From the sequence record OR529409.1: a stretch of DNA of 64,000 bases. One strand, given 5' to 3'. The stretch's first letter is position 1. Each line of letters opens with the position of its first letter. The notes beneath the pieces are model-generated. The model was not told where the DNA came from, ran no database searches, and was given only the letters and a program-made list of their open reading frames with translations. This document shows positions 4,349-18,049 of this stretch, piece by piece. The position numbers were made by a program, and so were the translations under genes.

Positions 4349-4842
4349 AATCAACTCCCACACTGAGTTTCGGGACTGGAGGAATTTCCGTCTCGATAAA
4401 AATTCAACTGAGAATTTTTACTCTGGGGTTTCGGCGGTTATAATATTTCACTGCGGGAATTTAAAAACTCAACGGGTTTACGATCCCGTATGTTTTTGAG
4501 TTTTATTTCCCGTATAAAATACTCCGTGCCGTAAGACAACACCCCACAGAAAAAACCTCGCCTCCGGAAAAAATTCCTCGAAGGCGAGTTGCCATGATCT
4601 CACTCGAGCAAGAATCAATCCGACATACAATCCCAAGCGCTCCGAAATTTTTTTCTTCGGAATTTTGGTCATTGGTAAATTTTTACATACAAATCTATTT
4701 TATATTTGTATTTTTCGCTTGCGCGGATATTCTAATTTTTCAAAGATAATCTAAAACCGATTCCGGTTCTGGGTTTTTTATTTTTCTGTGTTTTGATTTT
4801 CCAAATCCAATTTTCAAAAATCTAAATCTAAAAATCTAAAAA

Positions 4843-5217
4843 ATTTAATACTCAAAAATCGATTTTTGCTAGGGGTCCTTATTACGCGTGCGTACGCCCG
4901 CACGCATATAAAAAATAAATATAATACGTAGTATTATATTTTCCTTTGGTTTTATATTTTTAATTTATTAAAAATATATTAATATAAATTATTATAAATA
5001 TTTTTTATTAGTTTGTTTTTATAAAAAATATATAAATATATATTTATATATATTTATATTCATTAGGCGCGCGCCAGCGTGCGTGTGTGTACGTGCGCGC
5101 ACGCGTAATAGAGAAGGGGTTATAAAAATACAAGATTGGCCCTGAGAGATTATCCAGAAAAAATCACACAGAGTAAAAATATTAACCGGAATGATTTTGA
5201 GAAGATTTAATACTCAA
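4843..5217. other. origin-like element: near-pure AT core flanked by inverted and direct repeats
   Basis: 13-bp IR TATTACGCGTGCG 4880-4892 / CGCACGCGTAATA 5098-5110; about 155-bp almost all-AT core 4907-5065; 13-bp direct repeat ATTTAATACTCAA at 4843-4855 and 5205-5217. Function inferred. Confidence 0.5.
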
Positions 5218-5452
5218 CCTAGGAATTCGTATCAGTCGGATGAAAAAACGTTTTAGAAATCGATACAGGAATTTTTAGAGGGTGTTCTGATCGAGTTCTC
5301 AGGAAGGATTATTCACTGAATAAAAATATTTTAATCAAGATAATTAATTTTTACCGCAAGTTAGATTTATCGAGACAAGAAGATTTAACCGCAAAGTAAT
5401 ATCTTACGGAGAGCATAATCTTCTGAGCAGGACAGAGATCTCGAATTGTCAG

Positions 5453-6247
5453 ATGGCAAATACCCCATCCGTTCGAAAGTTAACCCGAAACATCCCTAAG
5501 AGGCGATATCCTATGCAACCAGCTAACCCATGGAAAAACAACAAGCACGTTAAATCACAAGACTCAGCAAGTGTTGATCGTTACGAATCCCTGTTACAAG
5601 AATTACCTGATGCGTTGAATGCAACCCCTCGAGATCCCGGATATCTTATAGCGACTAAAAAGATTTTATTAGTCCTGGAAATGTCTGAAGGAACCCGACT
5701 GACCGTTCGCAACGTGATGGAAAACCCAGACATGATTCGTAAGGTCCACGAGTTGTTGGTGGAGTTAGGCTGGAAGCAAGCGATTAGCCGAGGGACTCAG
5801 GTTTTCGTCACTCACCAGGATTTAATTAAACCGAGTATCTACCGCTTAATCGACCTCGACGCTAATGGGATCGGTTACGCTAACGAACTGCTGAATAATA
5901 TTTTATTAGACCGTCGGTTCAGTGCTCGGGTAGACAATAACGATATTCGAATCCTCCCAGGAGACCGTAGCGCAAGTAACCCCTTTAGCCTGCTGTCGTC
6001 TAACGTCGTCAGTGGTTGGCGTAAAGCCATACGGGATTACGACAAAAGCGTGACGGGTAATCTTATTGGACACATGACGGTTGTCGGCGAAGACAATACG
6101 AATATCCCGCTTGATTTAAAACTGGTTTTCGCTCTGCTGGATTACATTGGGTGGCCAGAAATGTATTTTACTGGCGAACAGATTTTATTGAGTAACCCCA
6201 TTGGGGATTATCAAACCCTTGAAGTGAATTTCATCGACCCTGAGTAA
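5453..6247 (+). CDS. orphan hypothetical protein (264 aa; alternative start ATG 5513 with GAGG RBS)
   Basis: Only long ORF in the 4350-7750 island; no recognisable motif. Confidence 0.75.
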   Translation: MANTPSVRKLTRNIPKRRYPMQPANPWKNNKHVKSQDSASVDRYESLLQELPDALNATPRDPGYLIATKKILLVLEMSEGTRLTVRNVMENPDMIRKVHELLVELGWKQAISRGTQVFVTHQDLIKPSIYRLIDLDANGIGYANELLNNILLDRRFSARVDNNDIRILPGDRSASNPFSLLSSNVVSGWRKAIRDYDKSVTGNLIGHMTVVGEDNTNIPLDLKLVFALLDYIGWPEMYFTGEQILLSNPIGDYQTLEVNFIDPE

Positions 6248-6319
6248 TTCCTAACGACAGAGTGATGTTATTAGTAAAGATCTTTGGACTCCCTGTTGAT
6301 TAACTAGCGACCCAACCTC

Positions 6320-6490
6320 ATCTCTTTGAACCTCCTTACCACGAGCGAGATAGCCAAAGTAGCTAGAGATTTTCAGGGGGTTCAATCCCCATTATTCGTT
6401 AATCTTATTAGACCCATTGTCCTTAGCCATGTAGCGACGGCCATTCTCCTGTGACAGACAAGTTTTTTGTTCAATGGGATAGATTAACGT
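6320..6490 (+). ncRNA. structured RNA domain upstream of the hammerhead
   Basis: Helices 6326-6336/6375-6385 (11 bp with one G-U), 6397-6405/6481-6489 (9 bp), nested 6413-6419/6472-6478 (7 bp); no ORF of 60 aa or more in the track. Confidence 0.6.
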
Positions 6491-6499
6491 TTTTCTTCA

Positions 6500-6572
6500 C
6501 GTCGTGTTATCTGATGAGTCTTCGACGCTAAACAAGACGAAACCTAATGAATCTATTTTATTAGGTCATAAT
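6500..6572 (+). ncRNA. hammerhead ribozyme, type I, predicted cleavage GUC after C6567
   Basis: CUGAUGA 6511-6517; stem II GUCUU 6518-6522/AAGAC 6534-6538; GAAA 6539-6542; stem III 6542-6551/6557-6566 (10 bp, one G-U); GUC 6565-6567; stem I 6506-6510/6568-6572; loop II CGACG 6523-6527 complements CGUCG 6500-6504 (pseudoknot). Confidence 0.9.
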
Positions 6573-7215
6573 TCAACCTAAGCGTTGAACGGGCAGTTAG
6601 GGGCAATGGTCCCCGAGGTCTTCAGCTTCTTCGCCTGCCCGCACTAAAAAGTTCTTTCATGATTAGGAGTGCCGCACTCTACGAGCGGACAATAAGCAAC
6701 CGAAAGTGGGAGAGAAAGAAGCGTGTCTGGTCGCTTGCCGGAAAGTTGGTTCAGGCCGGTTTCTTCCCAACCCAAACGACGCTGCCCAAGATAGGGCTGC
6801 AAGTCGTATTAGCGAATTATACCGGTATGCGGGGTTTCCGCGATAAACCGGGTTAGCTACGGGTAAGAAACCGGCCGGAGTAATCAGCCTTTCGTATTCG
6901 GGTAACGTGAGTTATTGTAGAGATATCTCTGAGGGTTAGGCCAACCCCCGACGTTCTCCGAGTCCGAAGGGAAGCTTGCTCAGCTTCGTAGGAACTCCAA
7001 AATCTCAGACGGTCACACCTCGCAATCTTACGGCAGTATGATTGCCTATTCGTCCTTTGTCGCTCACCAAGGGGCGAGTAGGAAACCTCTGCCACGGCGT
7101 TTCGTTTGCCTTTTACCATTGCTTTTGTTATAACCTCTCTGTTTGAGTTGAGTGTTAACTTCCCCAAGAGTATAACCTGTTATCTCTCTCTTCGTGAGAA
7201 GTCGGAGATAATGGG
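6572..7215 (+). ncRNA. large structured RNA of unknown class (about 640 nt)
   Basis: Many nested helices, e.g. 6590-6596/6635-6641, 6754-6765/6865-6876 (12 bp perfect), 6877-6881/6994-6998, 6971-6976/6982-6987, 7032-7037/7041-7046, 7127-7132/7171-7176, 7180-7186/7205-7211; G-U pairs read correctly only on the + strand. Confidence 0.65.
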
Positions 7216-7237
7216 GTAAATTCTTAGGAGGTTCGTT

Positions 7238-7426
7238 ATGTACACATACCAGTATACCGTGCGATACCGAATACCTAATTCTGTGTTTACGACTTACAGC
7301 GGAGAAATTACTTCCGACTGTTTGCTCACTAACGCTAATCGCATCTTTGACGTTTTGCGCACTGAGGTTCATAAAGCTACTAACGTTAACTCGTTTAGCA
7401 TTACGAACTTTAAGCTGAAAGAATAA
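7238..7426 (+). CDS. small protein (62 aa) inside the structured-RNA transcript
   Basis: Perfect AGGAGG RBS at 7226-7231, ATG 7238. Confidence 0.7.
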   Translation: MYTYQYTVRYRIPNSVFTTYSGEITSDCLLTNANRIFDVLRTEVHKATNVNSFSITNFKLKE

Positions 7427-7594
7427 GTCGAGCTACGCGCTCAACCTACCTTAGGGCCGGAAGTAGTTACGACTTAGGGGGAAAGAAGAGTCGTGCCTTT
7501 AAGTACCCCAACCCAATTCGTGTGGTGATCTCTCACATCATCTCATGAATATCGCCACATCATCATTAAAGTTCTACCATGAATTTTTATTCCT

Positions 7595-7626
7595 TCCAGT
7601 AGGGTTCGGCCCTACTGGACTTTTTT
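7595..7626 (+). terminator. intrinsic terminator closing the structured-RNA unit
   Basis: TCCAGTAGGG/CCCTACTGGA 10-bp stem, loop TTCGG, followed by a T6 tract. Confidence 0.9.
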
Positions 7627-7650
7627 CGCGTTTTTTAAATCGGCAGTTGT

Positions 7651-7691
7651 TTAATTATGTCAGAACTAGATTTTTTCAGTTCTAAATTATG
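7651..7691 (+). promoter_or_regulatory. tandem candidate phage-RNAP promoters upstream of phuZ
   Basis: TTAATTATG 7651-7659 and TAAATTATG 7683-7691; the same 9-mer is at 36397-36405; the TATG core resembles the phiKZ nvRNAP late-promoter start motif. Confidence 0.4.
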
Positions 7692-7757
7692 GTAATGTAA
7701 AGCAAAAGATAATGCTTTCCATTCCAACTATCATAATTTCTTTTAGGAGCTAGATCA

Positions 7758-8720
7758 ATGAGTACATTACGTGTTTACGCGTGCGGCGGTACTGGTATTA
7801 ATATCGCGTCTAAATGGATTGCCACCGGTGCGAATACGCTTATTCGTAAAGCCCAGTTCATCGGACTGGATAGCAGTGAAAACAACAAACCGTATAATGA
7901 CGCCTTTAAGGTCGAACGTCCTGAAGGAACTCGTGGCGGCGGTAAGGAACGTAAGCTGATCGGTAAAATTGCCGCCGGGTTTATTGACAGTATTTTGACC
8001 AAACATAAACCGGGCGATTTCAACCTGATCATCATGAACGCGGCAGGCGCTACCGGGAGTACGTTCGGCCCGACTCTGATCAATCGTCTCCTCTCCCAGG
8101 GGGTCCCTGTCATCGCCCTGGTCGTAGGCGACCTGACCTCGGAACTGGAAAACTACAACACAGTTAAAACGTTTGAAAGCCTGGACAACCAGCGCATCAA
8201 TCTGAACGTACCGGTTATCATCGACTACGTGGACAACGCCAAATATCCCAGCCGCGGATTGGCCGACAAATACGCCATCGGCCGTCTTGATATCCTGAGC
8301 CTGTTCTTAACCGACGAACATGAAGAAAGTGATTTCCAAGACATCCGGAACCTGTTCTATTACAACCAGGTTACCAAGGCGGCACCTACTCTTGCTCGTA
8401 TCGACTTCTTGACCGATACTCAGTTAGACAACGTTACTCCAGGCCTGGTTGCTGAATTTGGTTTGTATCGTAAAGCGGACGACATCGGCAGCCATATTAA
8501 AAATCTGGCATACCGTTCGACCGGCGTTATTCAGGAAGGTAGCACTAACTTCCCGGCTGGAATAGAACATCTCCACATGGTCTTTGATCATGATGCGACG
8601 ATCAAAGATATCCTGGTTCTGGTTCAGGATCTTAAAGATATCGAGATCCAAAATAACGAACGTTTTAAATCTGCCCAGCAGGTTGGAAACGGCGGTGATG
8701 ATTCCGGAATGTCCTACTAA
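7758..8720 (+). CDS. phuZ: PhuZ phage tubulin
   Basis: RVYACGGTGINI N-terminal tubulin/FtsZ motif, GTRGGGK, T4-loop-like AAGATGSTFGP; 320 aa; jumbo-phage context. Confidence 0.93.
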   Translation: MSTLRVYACGGTGINIASKWIATGANTLIRKAQFIGLDSSENNKPYNDAFKVERPEGTRGGGKERKLIGKIAAGFIDSILTKHKPGDFNLIIMNAAGATGSTFGPTLINRLLSQGVPVIALVVGDLTSELENYNTVKTFESLDNQRINLNVPVIIDYVDNAKYPSRGLADKYAIGRLDILSLFLTDEHEESDFQDIRNLFYYNQVTKAAPTLARIDFLTDTQLDNVTPGLVAEFGLYRKADDIGSHIKNLAYRSTGVIQEGSTNFPAGIEHLHMVFDHDATIKDILVLVQDLKDIEIQNNERFKSAQQVGNGGDDSGMSY

Positions 8721-8729
8721 GTAAAACAA

Positions 8730-8777
8730 TACTGCTACAGCCCTTCTATGGGGCTGTAGCAGTAGTTCTTTATTTTT
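8730..8777 (+). terminator. intrinsic terminator after phuZ
   Basis: TACTGCTACAGCCC/GGGCTGTAGCAGTA stem followed by a T-rich tract. Confidence 0.85.
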
Positions 8778-15777: not shown

Positions 15778-15922
15778 TGTAGTCCTGTTAGTAACTCAGT
15801 ATTATGTTATTACATATATCTATTATATGTAAACAAACACACCTCTCCGAAAGGAGGGGAGACCAATGCCGCGGAGTAAAAATCCGTTAAGCATAAAATC
15901 GATCAGTTTTTACCACCCCTAA

Positions 15923-15959: not shown

Positions 15960-16036
15960 CACAAATGTTTATCTGTTTTGATCAAACTTAATAACATCCC
16001 CCTTTATAAAAAGCTAATAGCTATTAGGAGTTAAGA

Positions 16037-18049
16037 ATGTCCGACAATCAAAATGGCAACAACTGGGAACAAACCGTCCTGAACACCGCTGCTGGTAAAG
16101 GAGAGCCGATCGTCTCTGCTTCTGCCGAGAATTTCGGTTCTCAGCTGCTCGGTCTGCTCGGCCAGGCTTCTCTTCTGGGTTCTTCCAAGAACGTGCCGGA
16201 AGTAGAAGAAACCGCGGCTCTGATCAAGAAACGCGTAACCGATCTGAAAAACGGTACGCCGGGCGAAACCCAGAAGAAGATCCTGCCGGAAGTGAACATC
16301 ATCACCAAACCGATCATCTCTGCACTGCCGGGCATCGTGCTCTCCCTGCACATGAACAACAACCCTGCGGTATACGTCATGCCGGTGCTGTTCTCTAACC
16401 GTCATCTGACCAATACCCTGGAAGAGATCCAGATCGACAACGGCGTTAACCAACAGCGCAAAATGTCCATGCCGTTTACCCCGGATTCCTACGCTCGTGC
16501 TGATCTGTTCGAACAGATCAAAATGCACTACAAAGCGATGCTCCAGGATAAAGGTGTGAGCGAATGCGTGATCATCAACGTGATGGTTATCGACCTGGAA
16601 CAGATCGTTGGTGACGATGTTCTGAATCAGGGCAAATCGCCGCTGCTGCGTGATGAAATCATGCGTAGCTGGGAACAGGGTCTGATGGTACAGATCGCGA
16701 AAATCGCAGCCAACCAGCCGAAAGCTTCTCTGCCTTCTCCGTTCTCTGCGACCGGTGGCAAAGCCTATGGCCAGCACGGTAATGCGATTGCTCGCGTTGA
16801 ACCGATCCGCGGTCAGTATGTTAACGAAGGCCTGCTGTCTCCGGCGAACCTGACCATCCGCATGCAAACTGCTAACCATAACGGTTATCAGGGTAACGCG
16901 GAACAGTCCCGTGAAATCGTCAACACCTACGCGACCGTTAGCCTGATGGGTTCTCCGATCCAGCAGTTCAACCCGCAGCTGACCGGTAACATTCCGCAGC
17001 CGTACCTGCAGACCCCTAACGGTCGTCCTCAGGGCTACACCCCGCTGCAGCCGGTGGTTATTATGAACCACGCTAAAGCTGGCGAAGTGCTGGGCGATGC
17101 GACTGGCCTGTCGACCTACTTCATGGGTCTGTTCTCTCTGATGGCGACCAACAGCAACTACCTGTTTGCTGAAGCTCTGCGTTCTAAGAACGTAGGTTCT
17201 CGTGGCTCCCTGACTGATATGGAACACCGCATCCGTCAGATGGAAAATGGATTACCTCCGCGCACTAAGGGTACTGAGATGACCGACGCTAAACTGTCGG
17301 ATATCGATTTCACCACTAACTGGATTCGCGCCAATATTGGACCTAAAGCAGTCTTTGCTGCTGACCTGATCCAGTTCGGCCCGGATGCGGCAATCTCCAA
17401 CTTCCTGTTCAACCTCACCTCCGGTGCGAAAGACTACAGCAAATGCGTGAAAACCGTTATTGCTATCGTCGATTCCATCTCCGGTGATGCGAAAGCCATG
17501 TCTGCGGTTATCGCAGAAAACCAGGCCAACAACAATGGTAACGGCGGATGGATTCCAGGTAAACCGGTACTGCACGTTTCTAACGCGCTGATCCCGGTCG
17601 GTACTGCTGTACTGGATAACAAACGCATTGCGCTCGGCGAAGTGGACGAGATGTTCCTGTCCAAGCACTACAAAGATCAGATCACCCCGATGAACCAGTA
17701 CCTGGAAAACATGTACGGGTCTAACCCGAACGTGCCGGAAAAACTGCGTCGCTACAATCTGTTGATCCAGCTGTCCACCATCTTCTCTGAAGGTGTAAAC
17801 CTGTTCGGCTTCGCTCGTCGTTGCTACTGGGATCCGCTGTTCATGGATGCGTTCACTAAAGCGATGAACACCATCGGTTCTCTGCAGGTTACTGGCTCTA
17901 TGGGTCAGTTCGCTGCTAACGTTCAGGTCTTCGCTCCTGGCCAGCAGTATATCTCTCAGGCAACTGCTGGTAACTCCGGTGGCGTCGTTCTGGGTAACGG
18001 TATGATGCTGGGTGCAGGCGGCGGTCTGGTGTTTGGCCCGTCCTACTAA
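16037..18049 (+). CDS. chmA: chimallin, major phage nuclear shell protein
   Basis: 670 aa, very strong highly-expressed codon bias, immediately upstream of nvRNAP beta' as in phiKZ gp54-gp55; AGGAG RBS; own terminator. Confidence 0.85.
   Translation: MSDNQNGNNWEQTVLNTAAGKGEPIVSASAENFGSQLLGLLGQASLLGSSKNVPEVEETAALIKKRVTDLKNGTPGETQKKILPEVNIITKPIISALPGIVLSLHMNNNPAVYVMPVLFSNRHLTNTLEEIQIDNGVNQQRKMSMPFTPDSYARADLFEQIKMHYKAMLQDKGVSECVIINVMVIDLEQIVGDDVLNQGKSPLLRDEIMRSWEQGLMVQIAKIAANQPKASLPSPFSATGGKAYGQHGNAIARVEPIRGQYVNEGLLSPANLTIRMQTANHNGYQGNAEQSREIVNTYATVSLMGSPIQQFNPQLTGNIPQPYLQTPNGRPQGYTPLQPVVIMNHAKAGEVLGDATGLSTYFMGLFSLMATNSNYLFAEALRSKNVGSRGSLTDMEHRIRQMENGLPPRTKGTEMTDAKLSDIDFTTNWIRANIGPKAVFAADLIQFGPDAAISNFLFNLTSGAKDYSKCVKTVIAIVDSISGDAKAMSAVIAENQANNNGNGGWIPGKPVLHVSNALIPVGTAVLDNKRIALGEVDEMFLSKHYKDQITPMNQYLENMYGSNPNVPEKLRRYNLLIQLSTIFSEGVNLFGFARRCYWDPLFMDAFTKAMNTIGSLQVTGSMGQFAANVQVFAPGQQYISQATAGNSGGVVLGNGMMLGAGGGLVFGPSY

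Follow-up and report, generated by a model that had tools for sequence, protein, structure and literature searches.

A predicted hammerhead ribozyme and a long structured RNA joined to a small conserved gene upstream of phuZ in Miami-type jumbo phages

What is encoded directly upstream of phuZ, the spindle tubulin gene, in nucleus-forming jumbo phages of the Klebsiella phage Miami type: an mRNA with an unusual leader, a large RNA that acts by itself, a processing site, or no RNA element at all? The window analyzed here (64,000 nucleotides (nt) of record OR529409.1) is from a phage genome of this type and contains a unit at 6250-7626, on the + strand, that lies between a gene for a 264-amino-acid (aa) protein and phuZ. 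A first-pass annotation, made from the letters of the window, had described the unit as a near-non-coding RNA locus with one 62-aa open reading frame (ORF), here ORF62, and ORF62 is indeed the only part that is conserved as a protein. A ribozyme and a structured, selected + strand RNA are well supported by the sequence comparisons. We tentatively read the locus, at somewhat less than an even chance, as a separate + strand transcription unit that would make a self-processed mRNA with an elaborate structured leader and a ribozyme-released anti-Shine-Dalgarno (anti-SD) switch.

The region is 100% identical in Stenotrophomonas phage BUCTxx100, 99.2-99.6% identical in Klebsiella phages Miami, phiKp_32 and YC1, and ~93% identical in KPN8 and Raoultella phage VB_ZK_P1. 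Searches of large protein collections with PhuZ and ORF62 gave four further lineages, all uncultured.

L013: PhuZ 74% identical; the contig begins inside domain B of the RNA (see below)
L014: PhuZ 48-49% identical; hammerhead present
L071-L073: PhuZ 47% identical; hammerhead present in L071
L074: a 606-base-pair (bp) fragment with an ORF62 homolog

The family sample is seven near-identical cultured phages and four uncultured lineages, two of these fragments. An ORF62 homolog lies directly upstream of phuZ in the further lineages wherever the contig reaches that far, and the RNA and ORF62 co-occur in five of five lineages. Both lineages that extend far enough upstream (L014 and L071) have the hammerhead.

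The predicted ribozyme has the following parts, all on the + strand and read from the sequence.

6499..6572: type I hammerhead ribozyme with pseudoknot, full consensus core, stems of 5, 5 and 10 bp
6499-6504: 5' tail ACGUCG
6506-6510 and 6568-6572: stem I, GUUAU/AUAAU, open, 5 bp
6511-6517: core CUGAUGA
6518-6538: stem II, GUCUU/AAGAC, with an 11-nt loop
6539-6541: core GAA
6542-6566: stem III hairpin, 10 bp
6567: C17; predicted cut between C6567 and A6568

The hammerhead claimed in the first-pass annotation is a complete type I ribozyme by sequence: a strict full descriptor has a single match in the 64 kb, both strands searched, and none in 200 shuffles. Of the three helices round the core, stem I is open, and a loop closes each of stems II and III. 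The closing pairs G6518-C6538 (G10.1-C11.1) and A6542-U6566 (A15.1-U16.1) are present, the same core occurs in L014 and L071, and the cleavage triplet fits N-U-H (GUC in the window and L014, GUA in L071). The pseudoknot pairs CGUCG of the 5' tail (6500-6504) with CGACG of loop II (6523-6527); the L014 counterpart is ACGUCU/AGACGU. In a four-sequence alignment that includes L014 and L071, 94% of cells are paired and there are seven compensatory pairs, six in stems I-III and one in the pseudoknot, versus 0-1 when the partners are slid by 1-3 columns. This covariation, which the RNA reading predicts among homologs, spans three lineages with PhuZ proteins only 47-50% identical, and two further hairpins (below) covary across four to five lineages.

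The Rfam scores are under the gathering thresholds (Hammerhead_3, 23.7 bits versus 48.5; RAGATH-1-hammerhead, 19 versus 56.3; L071, 23.7). The long loops are the likely cause, and the threshold is a matter of curation, not a structural criterion. A pattern made from stem II retrieved 55 IMG/VR phage contigs (L015-L069) with type I hammerheads. These lie between a stop codon and the next ribosome-binding site and have the architecture stem I, CUGAUGAGUCUU, 8 nt, AAGACGAAACC, hairpin, GUC, stem I; stem-loop II is invariant as GUCUU-UGAAAAUU-AAGAC, and several contigs have more than one copy (three in L052, two each in L032 and L039). Because its stem II and architecture are common to these contigs, we assign the predicted ribozyme, as a new member, to a known class, that of the type I hammerheads familiar from phage intergenic regions. 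It is like the published members (PMC3088659; Hammerhead_1, RF03152) in its core, 5-bp open stem I, stem II, stem III hairpin and GUC, and in its tertiary brace, a pseudoknot between the stem I side and loop II; pseudoknots occur in ~40% of hammerheads (PMC3088659). It differs in its larger loops II and III, its sub-threshold Rfam scores, and its occurrence as a single copy in a nucleus-forming jumbo phage. Perreault et al. (2011; PMC3088659) showed in vitro cleavage with constructs derived from three bacterial genomes. The ribozyme of the window probably cuts its own RNA after C6567.

A ribozyme of this class may do no more than separate the ORF62 mRNA from upstream RNA, with a leader that is structured for stability and has neither switch nor binding function. 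From the genomic arrangement, Perreault et al. (2011; PMC3088659) proposed that phage type I hammerheads cut polycistronic RNA, and such operon-level processing would fit both the 55 contigs with the same stem II between genes, some with two to three copies, and a terminator scan that found none between the upstream stop codon (6247) and the RNA. However, the IMG/VR and published hammerheads have the next start codon a few tens of nt away, whereas here 350-670 nt of conserved structured RNA follow the ribozyme, with conserved motifs, covarying hairpins and a conservation above that of the genes. With the candidate promoter just upstream, separation from the upstream gene may also be unneeded. 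We consider plain processing improbable, with a small chance of being the whole account.

The RNA that follows the predicted cut contains these features, all on the + strand.

6568..7226: structured RNA "domain B", the leader of ORF62 after predicted cleavage (from fold, identity and motifs)
6726..6748: hairpin UCUGG/CCGGA, then conserved AAGUUG; four lineages, three of five pairs with compensatory changes
6751..6879: long helix with 18-nt arms (6751-6768 and 6862-6879, 89% complementary) round a variable multi-branch insert; in the minimum-free-energy fold
6884..6891: conserved motif UCAGCCUU (GCAGCCUA in L014, L071 and L074), single and in the same order in each lineage
7177..7214: terminal hairpin CUGUUAUCUC...GAGAUAAUGG, just before the ribosome-binding site; five lineages

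Domain B (6568-7237) folds with -248.7 kcal/mol on the + strand (z = -4.7) and -216.2 kcal/mol on the - strand (z = -3.6). Comparison with KPN8 and VB_ZK_P1 within the Miami group gives identities of 98.8-100% for 6496-6575, 97.8% for 6576-6900 and 95-96% for 6901-7237, versus 82% for the upstream gene, 93-95% for ORF62 and 92-95% for phuZ; positions 6496-6900 are more conserved than the flanking genes, phuZ and ORF62 included. Between lineages the primary sequence of domain B is almost wholly diverged. Three short motifs, AAGUUG, G/UCAGCCU and CUGUUA...UAAUGG, occur once each and in the same order in the window, L014, L071 and L074.

In the terminal hairpin, four of the ten basal pairs are compensatory and 1 of 50 cells in the five lineages is non-canonical. 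Its base has U-G/G-U wobble pairs in all five lineages, tandem in three, which become mismatches on the opposite strand. The G-U pairs of the conserved helices are correct only on the + strand; together with compensatory pairs in independent lineages, this bears out the earlier proposal that selection acts on + strand RNA. At the position of the 6751-6879 helix the other lineages have a different helix (judged by eye). The length of domain B, ~350 nt in L014, 520 in L071 and 670 in the window, suggests a conserved core with variable insertions. The alignment of domain B is manual and the hairpin pair counts are on hand-set registers, as a multi-lineage MAFFT alignment did not bring the hairpins into register; given the small number of lineages, the compensatory counts are supportive, not statistical proof. 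A covariance model of the terminal hairpin region (R1), made from the Miami group alone, recovered noise and none of the other lineages; its flanks are unconserved and its effective sequence number is one, which makes it a poor detector. By our estimate, the long-range inverted repeats that link domain B with the coding region of ORF62 do not exceed chance.

We found no Rfam match at gathering thresholds in the whole 64-kb window, so the RNA has not turned out to be a known family under the test that the first-pass annotation had set against its novelty. Permissive searches (E<=10 in 6100-7800; E<=1 in L013, L014, L071 and L074) gave the weak hammerhead and chance matches only. The covariance models of GOLLD, ROOL, HEARO, OLE, raiA, group I/II introns, RNase P and riboswitches do not match, and ARAGORN detected neither tRNA nor tmRNA at its default or 85% setting, and only noise at 70%. 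Literature searches returned no description of this element. No counterpart of the cassette of ribozyme, leader and small ORF has been described, and domain B has no match among known RNA families. Like GOLLD, ROOL, HEARO, OLE and raiA, it is phage-borne, several hundred nt in size, highly structured and more conserved than neighboring genes; it differs from them in having no covariance-model match at E<=10, in being joined to a ribozyme and a small conserved ORF, and in being found in five lineages. One sequence in domain B, CCGAGUCCGAAGGGAAG (window 6957-6975), gave a weak raiA-hairpin match in Rfam and is identical in L013 (6-24). It resembles GCGAGUCCGACCUAGGAAG in a non-coding RNA of Vibrio phage Aphrodite1 (L004 ~4594-4612), which may be chance.

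Domain B leads into a small gene, on the + strand.

7226..7237: Shine-Dalgarno sequence (SD) AGGAGG and spacer of ORF62, with AGGAGG 6 nt before the AUG, read from the sequence
7238..7426: ORF62, a small protein with a predicted beta-beta-alpha-beta fold, conserved in five lineages

ORF62 is the only protein-conserved ORF between the stop at 6247 and phuZ at 7758 (tblastn E values of 1e-26 to 6e-8). No other stop-free piece of 6248-7757 has a tblastn match below 1e-4, except for short L013 matches in several frames on both strands. The homologs are 63% (L013), 34% (L014), 37% (L071) and 34% (L074) identical, with 12 invariant residues, and by this conservation ORF62 is a genuine small protein. 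An AlphaFold2 model gives a confident beta-beta-alpha-beta fold (pLDDT 92). ORF62 has no sequence match in Pfam, PHROG or PDB. Its best PDB fold matches are small archaeal/eukaryotic ribosomal proteins (LX/eL20-like; E 0.025, template modeling score 0.6-0.7), and its BFVD fold matches are only uncharacterized small phage proteins. tblastn of the distant ORF62 proteins against 50,697 GenBank phages found the Miami group only. An ORF62 alignment gave no match in IMG/VR, PhuZ alone gave no relatives there (its alignment led to known phages only), and the family-specific hammerhead pattern had no match in IMG/VR or GTDB genomes. A scan of JGI metagenomes returned only L070, a 95% Miami-like contig.

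Current records annotate part of the locus otherwise. Minus-strand "hypothetical proteins" are placed at 6596-6775 and 6853-7167 in the GenBank/RefSeq records of Miami (gp268 and gp269, ORFs of 102-104 aa), KPN8 and BUCTxx100. The variable sites of gp268 and gp269 by codon position are 5/5/8 and 12/6/4, versus 11/4/86 for phuZ, and tblastn gives no cross-lineage matches. These annotations look spurious and should go.

Such small proteins would be the ground for thinking that the locus is not an RNA element: it could hold missed or decayed protein genes, a TubZRC-like centromere, or an origin. In TubZ systems, the tubulin gene is preceded by a centromere and by a gene for an adaptor. However, we found no repeat family, direct repeats or tandem array in 6200-7800, and the predicted ORF62 fold is beta-beta-alpha-beta, not a winged helix, and we reject a TubZRC-type partition locus. 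ORF62 is the only conserved reading frame, the gp268 and gp269 frames show no codon-position bias, and the compensatory changes, strand-specific G-U pairs and complete, conserved hammerhead are also against a non-RNA explanation. It is very improbable and close to refuted.

The ends of the unit and its 5' arm have the following features, again on the + strand.

6264..6274: candidate promoter motif GATGTTATTAG, from the recurrence of ATGTTATTA in intergenic DNA
6275..6498: 5' arm ("domain A"), which differs in length among lineages
6328..6342: anti-SD element GAACCUCCUUACCAC, in the loop of a predicted hairpin; complementary to 7227-7234 in the ribosome-binding site of ORF62
7427..7594: "domain C", a 3' region common to the window, L013 and L014, which has the hairpin GAGC/GCUC and the conserved sequence CCUUAGGRCCG
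7595..7626: intrinsic terminator, an 11-bp stem (7595-7619) with six G-C pairs, then CUUUUUU

The terminator is as strong as the first-pass annotation had it. L013, L014 and L071 have a terminator at the same position, with a nearly identical stem in L013 and an entirely different one in L014 and L071. The hairpin of domain C has two compensatory pairs; domain C is not recognizable in L071 or L074 and is conserved only in the closer lineages. At the other end, the 9-mer ATGTTATTA has three copies in the window (6265-6273 on the + strand, 15804-15812 on the + strand and 15988-15996 on the - strand), all intergenic and each facing a gene. The two other copies fall between divergent genes, ahead of the chimallin gene (16037), and L014 carries AATGTTATTAGG upstream of its RNA. 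Since the motif recurs only upstream of the chimallin gene, a promoter at 6265 is plausible, perhaps of the class that drives chimallin.

Domain A is ~220 nt long in the window, ~420 nt in L014 and ~300 nt in L071, and is 88-89% identical within the Miami group. With a folding z of -1.6 it is not significantly structured on its own, so that of the structured domains described earlier, domain B (z = -4.7, covarying hairpins) stands and domain A is weak. A hairpin at 6376-6390 (GGGGG-UUCAAUC-CCCC) resembles a tRNA T-arm with its 7-nt UUCRANY loop. This isolated hairpin is the sole tRNA-like feature; there is no tRNA-like fold around it, and it was not seen in L014 or L071.

The anti-SD element is the conserved part of this arm. 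The window and L014 differ at one of its 15 positions (A6329 versus G), and the 13-nt ACCUCCUUACCAC is identical. It contains ACCUCCUUA, the sequence at the 3' end of 16S rRNA. The predicted pairings with the SD are GAACCUCC/GGAGGUUC in the window, GGACUUCC/GGAGGUCC in L071 and GGACCUCC/GGAAGUCU in L014, and the complementarity reaches past the generic SD core into bases specific to the ORF62 site. Over the three lineages the 8-bp pairing has one compensatory change (A-U in the window, G-C in L014 and L071), two one-sided changes and one mismatch. The element is upstream of the ribozyme, so cleavage would detach it from the mRNA.

A real small gene accompanies the RNA in every case, and for this reason we read its 3' product as an mRNA with a very long functional leader. 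That a single transcript is self-processed into discrete RNAs, as the first-pass annotation held, follows naturally from the predicted cut. Transcription from ~6275 to 7626 would give a ~1.35-kb RNA that processes itself, cut after C6567 by the pseudoknot-stabilized hammerhead. The 5' piece (~290 nt, with a 2',3'-cyclic phosphate end) would bear the anti-SD loop, and the 3' piece (~1.06 kb, with a 5'-OH start) would consist of domain B (660 nt), ORF62, a structured region 3' of it and the terminator. Until the cut is made, or as long as the pieces remain paired, the anti-SD element may pair with the ribosome-binding site at 7227-7234. The cut would sever the covalent link between the repressor arm and the mRNA, and loss or decay of the 5' piece would then make the ORF62 site available to ribosomes. 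In addition, the 5'-OH end and the compact folding of domain B may shield the mRNA from 5'-end-dependent decay. The unpaired conserved motifs of domain B (AAGUUG, GCAGCCUA, UAAUGG) would most likely be a binding platform, possibly for feedback by the ORF62 protein. We infer the transcription start, the actual cleavage, the anti-SD switch and any protein binding from the sequence.

Several observations weigh against this mRNA reading. The RNAduplex energy of the anti-SD pairing is no better than that of shuffled 5' arms, and the helix has three lineages and one compensatory pair behind it. In L014 the best partner of the element is ~15 nt upstream of the likely SD. KPN8 and VB_ZK_P1 have AGGAG as SD, with one G lost and uncompensated, and a local competitor, AACUUCC at 7157-7163, is also able to pair with the SD. 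The fold matches of ORF62 are weak and generic, and the protein is not consistently basic (net charge of about +2, -4 and +1 in three lineages), which makes RNA binding by ORF62 a guess. Finally, 350-670 nt of highly constrained RNA are far beyond the need of a translational switch.

Other complementarities were seen near the SD. UUAACUUCCC is identical in the window (7155-7164, before the terminal hairpin) and in L014 (1134-1143, in a 3' hairpin after the ORF), and is complementary to both the conserved GGAAGUU motif (window 6739-6748) and the SD. The anti-SD element of L071, ACUUCCAC, pairs perfectly with GUGGAAGU of the GGAAGUU motif. These are hints of alternative pairings, though the positions are not homologous.

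Likenesses to known leaders exist for parts of the proposed mechanism. Cleavage of the glmS ribozyme is ligand-dependent and destabilizes its mRNA. The glmS ribozyme and the type I hammerheads in the 5' untranslated regions of chryso- and fusariviruses (PMC13725137) are likewise self-cleaving RNAs in an mRNA leader, where the cut alters the fate of the downstream coding region; in these RNA viruses self-cleavage is needed for translation (PMC13725137), which gives the proposed mechanism a working precedent. The viral hammerheads act on eukaryotic cap-independent translation, whereas here release of an anti-SD arm is proposed in a bacterial system. Autoregulatory leaders of ribosomal proteins are also structured and directly upstream of a small protein gene, and ORF62 has LX/eL20-like fold matches; the leader here is several times longer than is typical, the match in fold is weak (E of at least 0.025) and ORF62 lacks a consistent basic charge. 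Should the anti-SD switch prove true, a self-cleaving ribozyme would here activate a bacterial-type mRNA in a novel manner.

The tight constraint on domain B raises a different possibility, in which domain B, alone or with the ORF62 protein, is itself the functional product and acts in trans on phage or host molecules. ORF62 would then be a passenger or partner, the hammerhead would trim the RNA to a defined 5' end, and the 5' piece with its 16S-like loop could be a small RNA that binds ribosome-binding sites; the location of the anti-SD element in a predicted hairpin loop is as in small RNAs with such targets. The unpaired motifs conserved across lineages with ~48% PhuZ identity are a pattern typical of tertiary contacts or binding sites. 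Other phages also have 0.5-1.3 kb of non-coding DNA with a terminal intrinsic terminator upstream of phuZ: Vibrio phage Aphrodite1 (L004 4503-4960), PDCC-1 (L005 4363-5000) and Erwinia phage RisingSun (L006 3675-4870, ~1.3 kb). In the Aphrodite1 group the first part of this region is 91-97% identical, compared with 75-89% for phuZ, and its fold is strong (z = -5.2). PDCC-1 and 2 TSL-2019 have an extra insert of ~135 nt there. None of these regions has a hammerhead or an ORF62 homolog. The constraint on the RNA above that on the protein genes and the Aphrodite1-type RNA at the same position, which does without ORF62 and ribozyme, give the trans-acting explanation some weight. Against it, blastn and nhmmer found no similarity between the window region and those of Aphrodite1, PDCC-1 and RisingSun, and shared motifs do not exceed chance level. 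Within the family the RNA was never found without ORF62, and the anti-SD complementarity takes in bases specific to the ORF62 site. On balance we hold a trans-acting RNA, the main rival reading, to be unlikely, with a chance that is still appreciable; if true, phages that keep transcription apart from translation would have a large RNA of a new class.

A further claim, that domain B founds a new class of large structured phage RNA, working as a particle (possibly with ORF62) or in trans, with the Aphrodite1-type RNA and perhaps the RisingSun stretch as relatives without ribozyme and ORF, we think improbable, at a modest chance. If it held, "phuZ-upstream RNA" would be a general feature, overlooked until now, in one branch of the nucleus-forming phages. 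In RisingSun (L006 4636-4700), AAGUUG follows a hairpin of 4 bp whose loop has 7 nt, and GCAGCCUG comes ~45 nt later. The order, AAGUUG then GCAGCC, is as in domain B; the co-occurrence is at a level that chance could give.

As for the large non-coding RNA of the first-pass annotation, a structured RNA under selection is retained, and a purely non-coding one is only partly supported, given its constant company with ORF62. The roles in the phage nucleus suggested there (scaffold, decoy, export, or work with ChmC) are speculation; the sole link of the unit to the spindle is its constant adjacency to phuZ. Two recent reviews of nucleus-forming phages name no ribozyme except self-splicing group I introns, and one says of non-coding RNAs only that phiKZ expresses them. 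The locus is a concrete candidate ribozyme in a cultured Klebsiella jumbo phage (Miami and its relatives), joined to 0.35-0.67 kb of RNA that evolves more slowly than the surrounding proteins and to the gene for a conserved protein of 62 aa; the whole unit is always found beside the gene for the spindle tubulin.

The neighboring genes mentioned above are placed in the window as follows.

5453-6247: lineage-specific 264-aa gene, upstream neighbor of the RNA unit, stop at 6247
7758-8720: PhuZ (tubulin, spindle) gene
16037-18049: gene for a chimallin-type nuclear shell protein

Three non-coding stretches near the unit are also of note. Between the terminator of the RNA and phuZ, 7667-7718 (which contains ATTATnnTAATGTAAA) is ~69% conserved with L014 1301-1354, in contrast to the 48% PhuZ protein identity between the same lineages, and is a candidate phuZ promoter. 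Directly 3' of phuZ, 8730-8764 is a perfect 15-bp hairpin with U/A runs on both sides, a candidate bidirectional terminator; Miami has a terminator annotated there. Further upstream, 4400-5450 is a 1.09-kb intergenic region between divergent genes, with G+C down to 24-30%, short AT-rich tandem repeats at 4816-5059 and several tiny ORFs annotated in Miami, and it may be a promoter cluster or an origin-like region.

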